A stretch of DNA of 64,000 nt from sequence record MH791398.1. One strand, written 5' to 3'. The notes beneath the pieces are model-generated. The model was not told the DNA's origin. It ran no database searches and saw only the letters and a list, made by a program, of their open reading frames with translations. A program made the position numbers and the translations under genes. Positions 1-11,967 of the stretch are shown piece after piece. Numbering within the stretch: the stretch's first letter is position 1; the number at the start of each line of letters is the position of its first letter.

Positions 1-2849
1 GTAACTGGGCTAATGGAACTGACAATACCGCAACTGCAACTACTCATACGGGTATTGTTGAGGTTAAACAACGATCTTTCGATAACTTGACTGTTCAGAA
101 ATTCAGTAACTGGGTAACAGTCGGTGGATTTGTAGAACCAAGAGAGTTTACAAGGGTATGGATTAATGCAGTTGAAGGTTGGCAACCATGGTTACCGACT
201 GGTGTGTGGGAACAGGTAAACACATACAGAACTGGTATTCTAAGACACAATAACTCTACTAATGACGACTCTGTTTATCCTTACGTATCTTATACCAAGG
301 AAAAATATCGTGATGGTGTTGCTGCTGGTATTCCATACACAATAGGTGAGGTTAGTTTTAGAGTTGGTGCTACAAACCGATATGATCCCCATAGTGGCGA
401 TCAGTTGTCTAGAATTATAGGTCAAGCAACAAACACAACCACAACCGGTGAATATGAAGGTACTTTGTTCTTAGCTTCTAGATATCGCAAAGGGTCTGAT
501 GGTTCGACTGCTGACACTAGTACACTAAGAATAAGTAGAGATGTTGGTGCTGAATTTACCCATGCAGGTAAGAAAGTACAGATCGAAACCGGTAATGTGA
601 ATGCAGAGAAATTTATTGTAACCACAACTGGTTATGCACTTCAATATTCCGGTAATGCAAACCAAGGAATCTATTTAGATAATAGAACAATTATTGGTGG
701 TGGTTCATCTGGTGTTGTGATTCGTCCAAATGGTTCGGGAACTGTAACTGGGGAAACTGTCTTTAATGCAACCGGTACTATATCAAATAACCAAGTTCCG
801 ACGTTGGCAATGCATTTAACAAACAAGGCATATGTTGATGGTGTTGCTCTTGGTGGTTTTAGTTCTATTATCACACTGAGAGATACAGATAACCTCAACG
901 ATATTAAAACCGCTGGTATATATAGCCAAGTTGCTAACGCTAAAGCATTAACTAGTTTGAACTATCCAGTTGAGAAAGCTGGTAACCTTATTGTTACTAC
1001 TTCCGCTGGCGTTATTCAAAAATATTGGGTATATAACTCGTCCGAAGTTTGGTCTAGAGCACAATATTCAAGTGGTGCGTGGAAGCCTTGGTATCGTGAC
1101 TATAACGAAGAGTTTAAACCTACTTCCGCTGATGTTGGGGCGTTATCTTTAACTGGTGGTACTGTAACTGGGGATGTTAGATTTAACTCTGGCAACACCA
1201 CTAGATTGACTCTTGGTAGTGGTTCTGATTATTACGTCGAACGCTCACCATCTGGATTGACATTAGCTTCTGGAACTGTCAATCCGAAGGTTAAAGTTAA
1301 TAACACAGATTATGACATATATCATACCGGCAATAAACCATCAGCCGCCGACGTTGGTACATTAACAACTGCACAGATAAACACAGAGCTTAACAAAAAG
1401 CTTAATCTGTCTGGTGGTATCATGACTGGTGCAATTCGTTGGGATGCAACAGATGAATATATCAACGCCGCGAGCAACAATATATATCTGGCTGCTAAGA
1501 CTGGTACTGTATATCTTGAAAGCAAAAATAACCCAATGGTGAGGATTGGAAGTAACGATTACACCATATATCACACTGGTAATAAACCTTCTGCTGGTGA
1601 TTTTAATGCATACACAAAAACTGAAACAGATAATTTACTTAATACTAAATTAAATCTGTCTGGTGGCACTCTAACTGGAGCGGTAACTACTGCAACCATA
1701 AAGAATGCTGTTATGATTAATAATGGTGCATCGATTAGTTTTCAAGATGGTTCTAATGCTAGATTTCATATATTAGCAGAAGGAAACACATTTAAACTAA
1801 AACATGGTAACTCAGGCGAAAACCAGATAATACAAGTTAGCCCAACAGTAACAGAACTTCAAAATCAGTTAAGTGCAAGAACTGCAATGTTTGTAAGTGG
1901 TGCAGATGGTACTAGGGTATTTGGGCTTGGAGCACAAGAATCTTCTGGTATAAACCCATACATATATGTAAGAAGATCTGGAGACACTGCAAACATACGT
2001 GTAATGACGTTTAATGATGGCGAGATTATTGCTAACCAAGACAGAATTGCTGCACCATCTTTCCGGGTTATCAATAATGCTGGTCTGATATTCACCCCGT
2101 TCGAAAACAAACAAGGTTTGTCTTGGGGGATGGGTATGGATCTATCTAATGGTAACCTTGGTATCCATCGTTATCAAGATGGTGTATGGAATCTCCAACC
2201 ATTTATGATAGGTTCGAACGGTGTGGTTACTATGAGTACGGGTTTCAACACAACCAGCGGAACAATGTCTGGTTCCCTAAGTGTTAATGGAAACATTGAG
2301 GTTGGTGGATCTGTAGGTGTTAATAGTGGTTATGCCTCTATCATTAGCAATAATAATAACAGACTAGAATTTCATCGTCCCGGATTTTGGGCAACAATGA
2401 TTTACATGAACACAGACGGTCAACTTCGATTTACATCAAGTAATGGTGCCGGTGGTGAAACTAAACTCAGAATGTCTATTGATAACAATGGTAATACCGG
2501 AATAGCAGGTTCTGTTAACGCTAATGGTGGTGTTCACGACGTAGGTCAACGAGTTTATTCACCAAGTAACCCAATTCCAGATGGTGTAATACTGAGATCA
2601 GTCGTCAATGGCGGCGGCAATATGGATATTGGTTCATATGCGATGGTCACAGTCAAATCCAACCTTGGTCCACAAGGTCCGGGGACTGTTCTCCAAGGTA
2701 CTCAGATTGCATTCTCGAACGCGGAAGGTACTAATATGGTTGCTTGTAACTATGGTATATGGCGTCTGATGGGTGTTTCTAGAGCAAATTCCCAAAACGG
2801 CGACGGTTGGGGTTCTTGGAACGTAACATTGGCACAGCGGATAACTTAA
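1..2849 (+). CDS. Long tail fibre subunit, 5'-truncated by the window edge
   Basis: Frame is open from base 3. Fibre repeats KPTSADVGAL / YHTGNKPSAADVG / KLNLSGGxxTG, and a C-terminal receptor-binding-type domain ending WRLMG...TLAQRIT. Confidence 0.85.
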   Translation, partial: NWANGTDNTATATTHTGIVEVKQRSFDNLTVQKFSNWVTVGGFVEPREFTRVWINAVEGWQPWLPTGVWEQVNTYRTGILRHNNSTNDDSVYPYVSYTKEKYRDGVAAGIPYTIGEVSFRVGATNRYDPHSGDQLSRIIGQATNTTTTGEYEGTLFLASRYRKGSDGSTADTSTLRISRDVGAEFTHAGKKVQIETGNVNAEKFIVTTTGYALQYSGNANQGIYLDNRTIIGGGSSGVVIRPNGSGTVTGETVFNATGTISNNQVPTLAMHLTNKAYVDGVALGGFSSIITLRDTDNLNDIKTAGIYSQVANAKALTSLNYPVEKAGNLIVTTSAGVIQKYWVYNSSEVWSRAQYSSGAWKPWYRDYNEEFKPTSADVGALSLTGGTVTGDVRFNSGNTTRLTLGSGSDYYVERSPSGLTLASGTVNPKVKVNNTDYDIYHTGNKPSAADVGTLTTAQINTELNKKLNLSGGIMTGAIRWDATDEYINAASNNIYLAAKTGTVYLESKNNPMVRIGSNDYTIYHTGNKPSAGDFNAYTKTETDNLLNTKLNLSGGTLTGAVTTATIKNAVMINNGASISFQDGSNARFHILAEGNTFKLKHGNSGENQIIQVSPTVTELQNQLSARTAMFVSGADGTRVFGLGAQESSGINPYIYVRRSGDTANIRVMTFNDGEIIANQDRIAAPSFRVINNAGLIFTPFENKQGLSWGMGMDLSNGNLGIHRYQDGVWNLQPFMIGSNGVVTMSTGFNTTSGTMSGSLSVNGNIEVGGSVGVNSGYASIISNNNNRLEFHRPGFWATMIYMNTDGQLRFTSSNGAGGETKLRMSIDNNGNTGIAGSVNANGGVHDVGQRVYSPSNPIPDGVILRSVVNGGGNMDIGSYAMVTVKSNLGPQGPGTVLQGTQIAFSNAEGTNMVACNYGIWRLMGVSRANSQNGDGWGSWNVTLAQRIT

Positions 2850-6199: not shown

Positions 6200-6493
6200 T
6201 TAGGCATCTACCCAATAAGAAAACTCTTCAATCGTCTTGAATACCATCATCCGTTTGTCTTTGAATCTAGTAACAACAATACCGGATTCCATAACACCAA
6301 CAATATATTCACATACCATTTCACATGGTTCATCAAAAAAGCAAACTTTAGTGTAGAAAGTTTTGATCTTGGTATAGTTACCCATATCAACAACTTCTAC
6401 CTTTTCGTAAGCTTCTTCGCAGATTTCAATAACACGTTTTACATCGTACATCTTTATATCCCTTTTTATTCTTATAGTTTCTTCACTATACAC
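6200..6493 (-). CDS. Hypothetical protein
   Basis: 97 aa ORF downstream of a sigma70-type promoter TTGACG-N17-TATAGT (about 6485-6515, minus strand). Confidence 0.65.
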   Translation of the reverse strand: MYSEETIRIKRDIKMYDVKRVIEICEEAYEKVEVVDMGNYTKIKTFYTKVCFFDEPCEMVCEYIVGVMESGIVVTRFKDKRMMVFKTIEEFSYWVDA

Positions 6494-8213: not shown

Positions 8214-8465
8214 TTAACTATATTGATAACCGGCGTTAGCCTTTTTCATTTCGTAATCATCATCAACAAAAACATCGTGATTACCGTGCATGATATCATG
8301 TTTCAATTTACGATCTCGCTGACGACTCAATGTATTATAACGATCTTTGACACCCGATTCTGGATAACTAGGATATTTATCTCCCAGATCCCGATTCACT
8401 TTAAGTTCATCACCATACCAACTGTCCAGATGTTTTTCATTTTTACGACGAAATGTCTTACCCAT
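8214..8465 (-). CDS. Hypothetical basic protein
   Basis: 83 aa ORF starting MGKTFRRK with a GGA RBS. Confidence 0.65.
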   Translation of the reverse strand: MGKTFRRKNEKHLDSWYGDELKVNRDLGDKYPSYPESGVKDRYNTLSRQRDRKLKHDIMHGNHDVFVDDDYEMKKANAGYQYS

Positions 8466-8475
8466 ATATCATTCC

Positions 8476-8712
8476 TTACAGGCTTTCTATGTATTTAATC
8501 ACTCGGTTTAGTATTTCATCTGAATCATTTATCTCAATATCATCAAATGCATACTTTATCTTTTTTATTACAGTTTCTTTCTTCCATCCGATCTTGAAAG
8601 CATCATTAACGAAAGAAACCCAATCAATAATATAACCGGAATTATAAAATTTCTCTATCAGAATATCCAACGGAATACCATTTGTTTCAAACTGATAAAA
8701 TACATTACACAA
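8476..8712 (-). CDS. Hypothetical protein with an AlaRS-like motif; start uncertain
   Basis: FYQFETNGIPLDIL resembles AlaRS FxLYDTYGFPLDLT; frame remains open upstream to about 8820. Confidence 0.5.
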   Translation of the reverse strand: MCNVFYQFETNGIPLDILIEKFYNSGYIIDWVSFVNDAFKIGWKKETVIKKIKYAFDDIEINDSDEILNRVIKYIESL

Positions 8713-8821
8713 AACCGGAATACCACTATTGGTATAACCATTTACAAAAACACTATTTTTACCTTTACGTCCTAACGGCTTGCGTTTAGCGGTGACATAT
8801 ACAACCTCTCTTTTTAAGTTT

Positions 8822-9294
8822 TAGCTTCATGTGCGGCTGCAAAGCAGGTCGAACCACCAAGGCACATACTTGTTGTTGTGGTTCCGTAAATCGATCCGGT
8901 CGCACCATCACCGGACTTAATAGCATTGGCTATCCGAGCCCAACATACAAACATCATCACCCCAATGGGCTACGCCTGCAAAACGGTCTTGCTCGTTACT
9001 TTTACGCTTAGGCCCTTATGGGAATCTAAGCCTTATATTTAACGTCATAACGGACGCGCTTATGTGATGGCTTGAATCAGTGGTCATTCACAAGCAATTC
9101 TCCCTATGTAACCTTTTACCCGTCACGGACTAGAACCTTATTACAGGGAAGGAACCTACATCACCATTTGAGAAATGAGAGAGGTCGGGGTTCGGTTTTT
9201 ATTTTCTAGCTTCCACTAGATTTTTTACAAATACCGGTGGGCTACTTAAAGCGTCGATTCTCATAGACCGGACTATTGACGAGAATCCAAAATT
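8822..9294 (-). ncRNA. Candidate large structured ncRNA, segment A
   Basis: About 470 nt with no sense ORF and at least 8 hairpins, directly 3' of tRNA-Thr. Confidence 0.55.
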
Positions 9295-9370
9295 TGGAGC
9301 CGGGTGTGGGACTCAAACCCACGACCTACGGATTACAAGACCGTCGCTCTATCAACTGAGCTAACCCGGC
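9295..9370 (-). tRNA. trnT: tRNA-Thr(UGU)
   Basis: Cloverleaf, anticodon loop CTTGTAA, encoded CCA. Confidence 0.93.
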
Positions 9371-9649
9371 AGAGGATTATAATCAGGATCGTTAGACTGT
9401 GATTATATCCTAATGTAGTTGACATGCTATCACAAGGAGGAAGGACGTTCAACCGATTTTTGTCCATCTGTTCGTTGTTTGGTAAAGGACTGTTACCTCA
9501 AGTTTCACCCTGCTTGTCAAGGGGTAGTTACCATATCGTCTTTATACTACCAATCCCGCCTGAAACCTAATGGCACGTTTCAGGATATCCAGATTCTCTA
9601 TGGCTGGCTTATTCCGGGGCATACGTCGTTACCCGTTCTTTGTGCTAAG
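9371..9649 (-). ncRNA. Candidate structured ncRNA, segment B (between tRNA-Pro and tRNA-Thr)
   Basis: 8-bp stem 9559-9566/9577-9584 and 11-bp stem 9373-9384/9401-9411; no sense ORF. Confidence 0.45.
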
Positions 9650-9725
9650 TGGTCGGTGATACAGGACTCGAACCTGTGACCCTCTGGTCCCAAACCAGAC
9701 GCGCTACCAACTGCGCTAATCACCG
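9650..9725 (-). tRNA. trnP: tRNA-Pro(UGG)
   Basis: CGGTGATTAGCGCAG..., loop TTTGGGA, CCA. Confidence 0.95.
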
Positions 9726-9879
9726 AAAAGTTCCAAACCAACTGTATTTTACATACCAGATGACCACATCCCTATAATGGTTGATTTGGATTACCCCGTG
9801 CTTATCCGTAACGGTTTAAAACCGCAAGGGGGCATCGTCTCCGAGGATTTTATCAGAACGTCTTCTAACTTCTTCTATT
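9726..9879 (-). ncRNA. Candidate structured ncRNA, segment C (between tRNA-Tyr and tRNA-Pro)
   Basis: 11-bp stem 9732-9742/9780-9790 with a G-U pair only on the minus strand; CCCC/GGGG closing stem with a nested hairpin. Confidence 0.4.
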
Positions 9880-10131: not shown

Positions 10132-10174
10132 ATGATATTTAGGGTGGTCTTTCACCCCTTCATGAATCTTGGTC

Positions 10175-10203
10175 ATTATAACCCGGCTACATACGCGCAT
10201 CAA
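10175..10203 (-). promoter_or_regulatory. sigma70-type promoter for the downstream tRNA/ncRNA run
   Basis: TTGATG-N17-TATAAT on the minus strand. Confidence 0.65.
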
Positions 10204-10237
10204 CATCCCTTTTATAATTTAGAGAGCTATGGGACTC

Positions 10238-10477
10238 TTAACAGCTCTTATTAAGATGATCTTTCAACCGTTCTTTTTCAACACACCACGATATTTTATT
10301 TTCTTTTATCCAAGGAGGTGTATCTGACCAATAAATAACAGATAGTTTAGATATGAAATTCGATATAATCTCAATATCCCAATCAGAAAACCCGATATGT
10401 TTATATGAAATCAATTCGGTTGGAGAATTTACATCAAATGACTTTAATCCGTTATCACCAACATATTCCATTTTCAT
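10238..10477 (-). CDS. Hypothetical protein in the tRNA cluster
   Basis: 79 aa ORF. Confidence 0.55.
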   Translation of the reverse strand: MKMEYVGDNGLKSFDVNSPTELISYKHIGFSDWDIEIISNFISKLSVIYWSDTPPWIKENKISWCVEKERLKDHLNKSC

Positions 10478-10495
10478 ATCACGTTTCCCTTTATC

Positions 10496-10572
10496 TGGTG
10501 GCCCCTACTGGACTCGAACCAGTGACCAACCGATTATGAGTCGGCTGCTCTAACCAACTGAGCTAAGGGGCC
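10496..10572 (-). tRNA. trnI: tRNA-Ile2(CAU), lysidine type
   Basis: GGCCCCTTAGCTCAG...CTCATAA...GGGGCCACCA, closely resembling E. coli ileX. Confidence 0.9.
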
Positions 10573-10895: not shown

Positions 10896-10944
10896 ATTTA
10901 TATAAACATCATATCATAGTTAGAAAGGATGTTTAACTTTTATT
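10896..10944 (-). promoter_or_regulatory. Early-type promoter, repeat copy 1
   Basis: GTTAAAC-N17-TATGAT with extended TG; 49-bp direct repeat with 11670-11718 (2 mismatches). Confidence 0.65.
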
Positions 10945-11338
10945 TGAAGTATTTTTCGAAGTAAGCGACTGGATGTCTTGCTTCTTCATCATACTCGTAT
11001 TTAGGGGTATCAGAAAACAACACCCTATAAGCAGTTTTCATCCCTGAACCATATGGTATCTCAATTTCGTCGTTAAAGTCAAATGCGATATAACCTTTTT
11101 TACGAAGGGAACGACAACTAACACTCAACCAAGGCCCACAACAGGATTTAAGTCTACCAATTGCGTAGATATCCTTACCCTCATTGTTAATATAACAATA
11201 AATCTTGTCTACATCAACACCATGGAGTTTTTTCCATTCTTCACTGGTTTGTTTGAAGATCAAACTTGATTGAACCACAGTAAGACCGTTCTTTACAAAC
11301 TTACTAATACCAAGAATATGAATATCATGTTTATTCAT
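10940..11338 (-). CDS. Hypothetical protein
   Basis: 132 aa ORF, GAG RBS. Confidence 0.65.
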   Translation of the reverse strand: MNKHDIHILGISKFVKNGLTVVQSSLIFKQTSEEWKKLHGVDVDKIYCYINNEGKDIYAIGRLKSCCGPWLSVSCRSLRKKGYIAFDFNDEIEIPYGSGMKTAYRVLFSDTPKYEYDEEARHPVAYFEKYFK

Positions 11339-11669: not shown

Positions 11670-11718
11670 ATTTATATAAACATCATATCACAGTTAGAAA
11701 GTATGTTTAACTTTTATT
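11670..11718 (-). promoter_or_regulatory. Early-type promoter, repeat copy 2
   Basis: Near-identical to 10896-10944; directly upstream of a tRNA. Confidence 0.65.
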
Positions 11719-11967
11719 TTTACTTTCTTTTATACCAAGTCGATATGCTTCTACACAGTATGCGTCGATCCTCGATACTGGGACCATAAAAGCTTTAGAA
11801 AGCCGAATCTTAATACGTTCGTTCTCTTTAGCCCGCTCATATAGTTTTCGAAATGGCTCAGGGTCTATAGGCTGAACAGAACATATTTGGTTTGCTATAT
11901 CTAGCGGGTATATTCTTCCACCCCAAGTTACTTTTTCTGATTCTAAAAAATTCATATCATTTCTCAC
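11707..11967 (-). CDS. Hypothetical protein
   Basis: 86 aa ORF overlapping the upstream stop codon. Confidence 0.55.
   Translation of the reverse strand: MRNDMNFLESEKVTWGGRIYPLDIANQICSVQPIDPEPFRKLYERAKENERIKIRLSKAFMVPVSRIDAYCVEAYRLGIKESKNKS

Follow-up and report, generated by a model that had tools for sequence, protein, structure and literature searches.

Small stable RNAs that are not transfer RNAs (tRNAs) are familiar from the tRNA regions of large phages. The rnaC and rnaD genes of phage T4 (species 1 and 2) and RNAI, RNAIII, RNAIV, RNA1, RNA2, RNA2H, and RNAX of phage T5 specify small non-tRNA RNAs on the tRNA strand, which lie within the tRNA clusters or end them. Both sets are transcribed together with the tRNAs and processed alongside them, and the T4 and T5 records have long labelled them as stable RNAs of unknown function. 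GOLLD and ROOL, structured RNAs of phages and prophages whose function is likewise unknown, often occur beside tRNA genes as well. Theta ribozymes, which are related in type to the hepatitis delta virus (HDV) ribozyme, have been found adjacent to phage tRNAs (PMC10879173). The present analysis concerns a 64,000-nucleotide stretch of sequence record MH791398.1 (hereafter the window), in which a tRNA-Thr gene is followed by a non-coding segment, Segment A (positions 8822-9294). The 1.1 kb around Segment A are identical to Aeromonas phage Asswx_1, MH791398.1 (Straboviridae, Emmerichvirinae, Ceceduovirus); the source is a T4-like phage of Aeromonas. Rather than one RNA, Segment A comprises a mosaic of RNA modules that are inherited separately. 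One of these modules, M2, contains an RNA of approximately 100 nucleotides (nt), the M2 core, which very probably is a functional structured RNA. We regard it as probable that the segment as a whole belongs to the tRNA-Thr transcription unit as its non-coding 3′ portion, and that the M2 core is one copy of a widespread, covariation-supported family of small phage RNAs. The family, an addition to those described for phage tRNA regions, is very widely distributed, and T4, the best-studied phage, has a copy of it.

Segment A comes after tRNA-Thr just as rnaD and rnaC come after tRNA-Arg in T4. Two covariance models of the M2 core, R1 (from seven in-register sequences) and R2 (rebuilt from 24 hits), gave no match in the T4 tRNA region (65,000-76,000) up to an expectation value (E) of 10, and rnaC and rnaD are not members of the family; a similarity of rnaD seen by eye (GAUGG, CUGAGUAAGG, UUACAU) was rejected by both models. 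When applied to positions 22,000-48,000 of T5, which include its tRNA region, the models returned one 11.6-bit match (E = 1.3), located outside the tRNA array and far from the stable RNAs. T5 RNA1, RNA2, and RNA3 are labelled tRNA-like in the record, and in T4 the terminal sequence of rnaC resembles a T-arm and that of rnaD is CACCA, whereas the M2 family is not tRNA-like. The T4 copy of the family lies elsewhere than rnaC and rnaD, namely between denV and vs.8. GOLLD and ROOL, in contrast to the M2 core, are ornate RNAs of 500-800 nt with Rfam models of their own, none of which matches here. Searches of Rfam 15 with 8822-9294 gave no credible match (E up to 10), the window as a whole scoring solely with tRNAs and weak tRNA-derived matches; among nine other members nothing overlaps the element at E up to 5, save a chance-level match to ClpQY_promoter (E = 5). 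Literature searches retrieved no description of an M2-core RNA. The family groups with the stable RNAs of phage tRNA regions, is unrelated to the T4 and T5 examples tested, and is not in Rfam.

Fold and covariation of the M2 core

The M2 core extends over 9099-9203 on the minus strand and is recognized at 9104-9202 by models R1 and R2 with 118.6 and 106.4 bits, respectively; both models find a single copy in the window. The predicted fold begins with an A-rich leader (A-run, 9196-9205) and a helix P1 of 4-6 base pairs (9194-9197 with 9153-9156), the loop of which includes a variable hairpin (9165-9177). P1 is followed at once by a three-way junction, in which helix P3 (9149-9152 with 9112-9115) closes the invariant hairpin P3a of the form CCU-GUAANA-AGG (CCU at 9145-9147, loop GUAAUA at 9139-9144, AGG at 9136-9138) and a small variable hairpin P3b (9128-9130 with 9122-9124), linked by a conserved GUAA (junction GGGUAA, 9116-9121). 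The sequence UUACAU (9106-9111) and the tail GGGAGA (9099-9104) complete the core; the tail can pair with UCUCUC at 9178-9183.

The helices were found by anchoring the sequences on the invariant hairpin, and afterwards by means of the covariance models. RNAalifold found almost nothing in a raw MAFFT alignment of distant members, and an automatic column-pair scan, with the 5′ halves misaligned, gave no helices. P1 occurs in at least ten complementary forms (AACC/GGUU, AAGC/GCUU, AGGC/GCCU, ACUCCG/UGGAGU, GCCAC/GUGGC, GAGUG/CACUC, GAGGG/CCCUC, AGACG/CGUCU, AAAGG/CCUUU, and GGGAA/UUCCC) and P3 in at least six (CCUU/AAGG, CUUU/AAAG, ACUU/AAGU, CGUU/AACG, CCCU/AGGG, and CUGG/CCAG), while P3b appears as GUC/GAC, GCC/GGC, GAC/GUC, CCC/GGG, and GCGC/GCGC. 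Standard pairs fill 97.5% of the cells in a model alignment of 26 sequences, as compared to 75.3% in shuffles, and both sides have changed in 11 of the 14 pairs (69 cells versus 13.9 in shuffles). The covariation score of 0.599 (shuffled, 0.163) was reached by none of 500 shuffles, and dropped to 0.106 or less when the 3′ partners were slid by 1-3 columns as a control. An earlier set of 24 sequences gave the same picture. The G-U pairs fix the strand of the M2 core as that of the tRNAs; the supported helices are rich in such pairs, which on the opposite strand would be A-C mismatches, and the stretch is thus placed on the tRNA strand.

The three pairs of P3a never vary among the 26 sequences. 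A mimic of the tRNA-Tyr (GUA) anticodon loop was considered for this invariant hairpin and rejected: the loop has 6 nt, not 7, and differs in the 370-kb phages (UUAAAA, UGAAAG). Its GUAAUA was also likened to the hexaloop of the ribosomal L11-binding domain; the remaining sequence differs, and the likeness was set aside.

The idea that the hairpins arose by chance in a fast-evolving spacer, or reflect DNA-level signals such as promoters, recombination cassettes, or endonuclease sites, would agree with the weak folding z-scores of the whole segment, with module junctions that are hot spots for unrelated insertions (CC2, ZPAH1), and with the homing endonuclease genes in the arrays of relatives. 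It is barely credible given that compensatory changes preserve three helices across unrelated phages and that G-U pairs are tolerated on one strand only; for M2 and for M3, the second structured module, it is largely refuted. The core is, moreover, 88-92% identical between T4-like and T5-like Aeromonas phages, which again speaks against mere chance and suggests either that phages sharing a host have exchanged it or that constraint is very strong.

Just 3′ of P3, the tail of the element is complementary to the P1 loop in one lineage after another: CUCCGG/CCGGAG in Ivi, GCCAG/CUGGU in FV3, CUUG/CAAG in the 370-kb phages, CCCGG/CUGGG in locus L013, GUCCCA/UGGGAU in KASIA, and UCUCUC/GGGAGA in the window. 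Such pairing would create a nested double pseudoknot, a topology that we infer only, because the partners do not lie in one register. HDV-like ribozymes would share this helix order, and the association with phage tRNAs and the compactness are common to both. In detail, the order P1, P2 5′ strand, hairpin, P1 3′ strand, P3/P4-like domain, P2 3′ strand would be that of an HDV-like layout; P1 and the P4-equivalent three-way junction covary, and the P2-equivalent is seen lineage by lineage, not in one register. The M2 core as a ribozyme whose self-cleavage cuts polycistronic transcripts (tRNA or mRNA) would also be consistent with the short covarying helices, whose weak predicted stability is typical of compact catalytic or ligand-binding folds, and with the proximity of theta ribozymes to phage tRNAs. 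A further point in its favor comes from two environmental loci, L022:9698-9764 (minus strand) and L133:3297-3419 (minus strand), which contain a type-I hammerhead-like sequence, GCUAUA-CUGAUGAG-stem II-GAAAC ... GUC-UAUAGC, its stem III being formed by that same three-way junction (CCU-GUAANA-AGG / hairpin / GUAAAA).

A self-cleaving ribozyme nevertheless appears quite improbable. The hammerhead core (CUGANGA and GAAA) occurs in L022 and L133 only, where the Rfam hammerhead models score below the gathering score; the window has GGUGAUGUA in its place, lacks the CUGAUGA core, and shows no Rfam hammerhead match. In none of the members scanned does an Rfam model of the HDV, hammerhead, twister, pistol, or hatchet families overlap the element (E up to 5-10). 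The catalytic C (J4/2) and P1.1 of HDV-like ribozymes are absent; the linker following P3, where the catalytic C would be placed, has no conserved C and consists of U, UU, or UG in members such as Ivi and the 370-kb phages. In addition, the M2 core differs from the HDV-like layout by its shorter P1, by the long linker after the P1 5′ strand, by the conserved A-run before P1, where HDV-like ribozymes show no conservation, and by the conserved three-way junction at the position of P4.

Distribution, genomic context, and possible roles of the family

Distant blastn searches matched about 60-100 nt of the window (9097-9203) in unrelated phages, first in Shenzhenvirus (Demerecviridae) phages of Aeromonas, Ahp1_CNU, Citrobacter phage Ci1, and Shewanella phage KASIA. 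Pattern scans and blastn yielded further members in IMG/VR contigs, in the 370-kb phages XbC2, Kaldavass, L016, and L020, in E. coli phage ESCO10, and in Klebsiella phage KLB31; in unrelated phage groups, the covariance models score between 20 and 121 bits. The ESCO10 copy as blastn query matched 1017 phage records. Counts by the leading word of the organism name include 557 for Escherichia, 161 for Klebsiella, and 76 for Shigella, and among the records are T4, T2, Straboviridae of Salmonella, Citrobacter, and Enterobacter, the rV5-like phages FV3 and A140, and the 44.9-kb phage Ivi. Loose pattern scans of metagenome and genome collections gave mostly chance or coding matches, and of the three loci added by three further viral scans only L247 is a member. 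In sequencing contigs, the core sequence 9106-9169 recurs with other flanks. Tandem arrangements were observed in KLB31, with two copies of the element (L249:1494-1584 and 1629-1738, minus strand), and in the IMG/VR contig L018 (2884-2995 and 2769-2878, minus strand), whose second copy is divergent (24.8 bits).

The element is located in or beside tRNA arrays in the T4-like and T5-like Aeromonas phages, Ahp1_CNU, the 370-kb phages, Ci1, L011, and FV3. In the Aeromonas phages it is on the tRNA strand within the array, and in Ci1 just upstream of it; the Ci1 and L011 copies are situated between a lysozyme gene and the tRNA promoter. KASIA has the element in the spacer between terL and the portal gene, Ivi in another operon spacer, and the Tevenvirinae upstream of vs.8-like genes.

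The T4 copy (NC_000866 64,853-64,942, minus strand; L255:3354-3443) scores 40.4 bits with an E value of about 3e-8. Its match starts at the stop codon of denV and runs over the position annotated as the vs.8 start (64,912). The start conserved among T-even phages, MC(H/Q)GMA, lies 75 nt farther downstream than the annotated one, at L255:3338. An extension of the open reading frame (ORF) through the element is found in T4 only and is not conserved, and ESCO10 has an in-frame UGA two codons ahead of the shared MC(H/Q)GMA start (read by eye); hence, we consider the T4 element to be a leader rather than coding sequence. The annotated N-terminus of vs.8 is probably not translated, and in some records the starts of T4 vs.8 and its homologues have probably been placed too far upstream. 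A similar problem of start placement was noted for KLB31 gene MVRL130. In a 2026 preprint, vs.8 is characterized as a terminase-ATPase-like protein; the RNA element is not mentioned there. With its 90 nt between denV and vs.8, the T4 copy makes the role of the family directly testable in a tractable system.

Could the M2 core act in cis, on the processing, stability, or translation of its own transcript, for instance as an exonuclease barrier or a leader? It is always sense-oriented inside operons; in T4, ESCO10, KLB31, and CGG4-1 it is found between denV or ip genes and a vs.8-like gene, about 15-55 nt before the MC(H/Q)GMA start, and the copies of KASIA, Ci1, and L011 also occupy spacers, as described above. 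In the Aeromonas and 370-kb phages, however, the element is followed by a tRNA or a further non-coding module and not by an ORF, and no conserved sequestration of a Shine-Dalgarno sequence was seen across the lineages. The XbC2 copy, furthermore, has a promoter of its own, TGGTATAAT, which ends about 10 nt before P1 and is of a kind also found before the neighboring tRNA. Taken together, we rate a cis-acting function as rather unlikely. In the Xanthomonas phage XbC2 (L251:1414-1652), one and the same promoter-like unit (TTTGGAACG ... TGGTATAAT) stands before the element and again before the tRNA-Met that comes next, and the XbC2 element looks like a gene of its own.

If the M2 core is a member of a small-RNA family, as we favor, its RNA would be transcribed together with its neighbors in the tRNA-Thr transcript, or from its own promoter in the 370-kb phages. 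The enzymes which process the flanking tRNAs, and mRNA, would then release or retain the M2 RNA. The product would be a compact stable RNA, and its invariant three-way junction might serve as a binding platform, most likely for a protein. Action in trans by binding of a protein is a tentative suggestion, which we would not put higher than doubtful.

Several points weigh against this interpretation as a whole. The pair counts derive from model-fitted alignments, which lean towards the structure, even though the number of double changes across unrelated phages appears large despite this. The register of the pseudoknot partner differs among lineages, and the complementarity is seen lineage by lineage rather than on the alignment. 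The nested fold supported by covariation amounts to -3.9 kcal/mol, as compared to -21.8 kcal/mol for the thermodynamic optimum, which consists of other pairs, and the M2 core folds no better than shuffled sequences (z = +1.0). Provided that the covariation is right, the true fold would require tertiary contacts or a partner. The sequencing runs labelled as RNA are assembled contigs, probably of DNA, and show the presence of the sequence, not expression or ends. The context varies from tRNA arrays through the 5′ leader of vs.8 in T-even phages to the terL-portal spacer of KASIA, and fits no single cis function. Finally, protein binding by the M2 core is purely inferred. A bolder version holds that the M2 core represents a new class of compact, double-pseudoknotted RNA, either a new self-cleaving ribozyme or a decoy or sponge for host or phage proteins (e.g. 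in tRNA conflicts or anti-defence), which has been exchanged horizontally among unrelated large lytic phages and was overlooked in T4 under the vs.8 annotation; we think this unlikely.

Directly 5′ of the element in locus L013, at 6307-6344 on the minus strand, an abiF RNA motif (RF03085) was detected with 42.9 bits. It is a neighbor of the M2-type element and a different RNA. No ORF of 80 or more amino acids (aa) is called on that strand in L013 between 5445 and 6397, and no abiF-like ORF was called beside the motif; the motif had no match in the window or in the other members scanned and was seen in this one contig only. Its presence in L013 hints at a non-coding RNA island that might be tied to defence or counter-defence.

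Modules of Segment A

The first-pass annotation of this DNA had implied that Segment A is one structured RNA of about 470 nt. There is genuine structured RNA inside, but no single unit: comparison of positions 8400-9800 with seven relatives by blastn resolved at least four modules which have been gained and lost independently. M1 (9224-9294, minus strand) is the 3′ trailer of the tRNA, with a hairpin at 9256-9287 and a conserved motif CGACGCUUUAAGUAGCCC at 9239-9256 that is unique within the window. M1 follows the last tRNA of the sub-cluster (tRNA-Thr in the window, tRNA-Asp in the case of phages 65.2 and avDM6), and its hairpin shows one compensatory pair (U-A to C-G). In the Shenzhenvirus-like contig L155, a compensated variant of the M1 hairpin and then CGACGCUUUAAGUAGCCC occur beside an M2-type RNA, while in Aswh_1 and ZPAH1 the CGACGCUUUAAGUAGCCC motif alone precedes the M2-type element. 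A side observation in L155 is a tRNA called by ARAGORN at 334-408 with anticodon CUA (amber-reading, labelled Pyl), in an array of 23 tRNAs; the contig is filed under a Phocaeicola metagenome-assembled genome, a binning that is probably due to contamination.

M2 (9035-9223, minus strand) has the core RNA flanked by one hairpin on its 5′ side (9205-9220) and by two on its 3′ side (about 9058-9095 and 9042-9057). It is present or absent as a block, occurring in all Ceceduovirus genomes, in Aswh_1, and in ZPAH1, and being cleanly missing from 65.2 and avDM6.

M3 (8889-9034, minus strand) is a four-hairpin RNA that is present in all seven relatives and was matched by blastn solely in Emmerichvirinae; it is a second structured RNA, confined to this phage clade. 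Its hairpins are located at 9006-9032 (hairpin 1), 8935-8995 (hairpin 2, apex at 8959-8970), 8919-8934 (hairpin 3), and 8894-8916 (hairpin 4). RNAalifold predicted 43 pairs from seven phages; four pairs show compensatory changes, G-U pairs are frequent, and hairpin 1 varies in the length of its apex with pairing kept. CATTGG and CCAATG, for which a pseudoknot or switch had been suggested initially, correspond to the apical loops AUUG of hairpin 2 and CAAU of hairpin 3 with their closing pairs. The two loops are complementary, and a kissing contact or switch between them is possible; as both are invariant in the seven relatives, covariation cannot reach it. A pseudoknot does seem to be present in M2, not here.

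M4 (8713-8888, minus strand), identified from the alignment and a consensus fold, is non-coding and lies between M3, or tRNA-Trp in relatives, and the next coding sequence (CDS). It contains a hairpin GGAACCAC...GUGGUUC at 8851-8885, after which comes GAC. The layout of tRNA-type spacer, stem of 7-8 base pairs, and UCGAC is common to M1 and M4 and may reflect a processing signal or a tRNA remnant.

The junction at 8889-8891 (minus strand) is the site of a tRNA-Trp (CCA) gene, absent here, as deduced from blastn blocks, ARAGORN runs on the relatives, and the annotation of P19. The gene is present in P19, AP1, CC2, Aswh_1, and ZPAH1 (e.g. L002:3192-3266, L240:1422-1496, L245:1415-1497), whereas the window and about seven other Ceceduovirus isolates lack it; Assk has a shortened copy that is not called by ARAGORN, and loose ends that read into tRNA-Trp at 8891 were observed in two sequencing runs. 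At 9034, the junction of M2 and M3, unrelated insertions of about 85 nt are found in CC2 and ZPAH1 (L240:1650-1736; L244:1648-1732), the one in CC2 being flanked by a repeat of window positions 8988-9034; Assk has a run of N at this junction. The Aeromonas phages thus reveal a gain/loss polymorphism of tRNA-Trp and modular exchange of non-coding cassettes.

In view of such turnover, the segment might consist of decayed tRNA genes or fragments, with the hairpins as leftovers. The presence/absence of tRNA-Trp and its truncation in Assk would fit, and M1 and M4 both start after a tRNA-type spacer (AAUUUU, then GGA...) and continue with the stem and UCGAC, a possible remnant of an acceptor or T-arm. 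Neither ARAGORN nor the tRNA covariance model (E up to 10), however, yielded a call between 8400 and 9294. Neither M2 nor M3 folds like a cloverleaf, and M2 is found at places remote from tRNAs as well, so that tRNA decay is contradicted for these two modules and highly improbable for the segment.

Segment A is non-coding: its short ORFs are disrupted in relatives by tRNA-Trp and other insertions, and those of 46 and 48 aa on the minus strand and of 60, 38, and 45 aa on the plus strand all cross insertion-bearing junctions, leaving no conserved ORF. A frame of 23 codons after GGGAG (AUG at 9087) seemed conserved when the window was compared with Aswh_1, with an indel that keeps the frame. It was rejected as coding, since it crosses the M2/M3 junction (judged by eye), has lost its 5′ half in 65.2 and avDM6, and contains insertions in CC2 and ZPAH1.

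The ten stems listed initially and the alternative pairing of CATTGG with CCAATG are all perfect Watson-Crick complements. Perfect stems of at least 5 base pairs with loops of 3-40 nt number 23 in the segment, versus 12.5 ± 3.5 in dinucleotide shuffles (0 of 300 reach 23), and those of at least 6 base pairs number 7 versus 3.0 ± 1.7 (12 of 300 shuffles reach 7). The minimum free energy of the whole segment corresponds to a z-score of -1.30 on the minus strand and -1.72 on the plus strand, with 7 and 6 of 100 shuffles, respectively, folding equally well; the result is borderline and alone cannot tell the segment from chance. By module, z is -2.28 for M3 (8889-9037), -1.70 for 9035-9100, and -0.35 for M1, besides the positive value of the M2 core. 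The stems are real and somewhat enriched, only modestly beyond chance. Comparison with relatives backs those at 9256-9287 in M1 and at 9006-9031 and 8895-8915 in M3, and neither backs nor contradicts 9205-09/9216-20, 9070-74/9091-95, and 9046-50/9060-64. Stems 8937-42/8966-71 and 8829-34/8862-67 are missing from the consensus folds. Stem 9101-05/9145-49, which is used in the thermodynamic optimum of the M2 core, clashes with the covarying helix P3 and with P3a; the best-supported fold of the central module relies on helices that had not been listed, and excludes this one.

The tRNA array and the ends of the non-coding stretch

Ten tRNA genes are encoded on the minus strand between 9295 and 11667 (ARAGORN, Rfam), the last being tRNA-Thr (UGU) at 9295-9370 with an Rfam tRNA score of 68.1 bits. 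Segment A lies directly 3′ of tRNA-Thr in the tRNA's own sense, as had been stated. Its lower boundary at 8822 is arbitrary: the non-coding run spans 9294 down to 8713, and its real end is the first downstream CDS (8476-8712, minus strand), which appears in the ORF list and codes for a hypothetical protein homologous to CC2_360 (CC2 and P19 annotation). None of the downstream proteins, including this one, matched a Pfam family above the curated cut-off. Just 5′ of tRNA-Thr, a promoter scan identified a sigma-70-like sequence, ATCACA-16-TATAAT (9403-9376, minus strand), and no intrinsic terminator, i.e. a G+C-rich hairpin with a U-run, was predicted on the minus strand between 8300 and 12000. 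Because of the promoter-like site upstream and the lack of a predicted terminator, a transcript starting there would be expected to read through all of Segment A.

The 279-nt spacer between tRNA-Pro and tRNA-Thr (9371-9649) is also non-coding and is about 81-82% conserved in 65.2 and avDM6. Farther upstream, tRNA-Arg and tRNA-Leu(UAA) are closely preceded by the copies of a direct repeat of 61 nt (10896-10956 and 11670-11730; 89% identity). Both copies include TAAACA-16-TATGAT, a promoter-like sequence with an extended TG, and the repeat looks like a promoter cassette duplicated for tRNA sub-clusters. P19 contains a putative homing endonuclease gene between tRNA-Met and tRNA-Gly (L002:4723-5226); the matching place in the window (10132-10572) is occupied by a 79-aa ORF and a second tRNA-Met.

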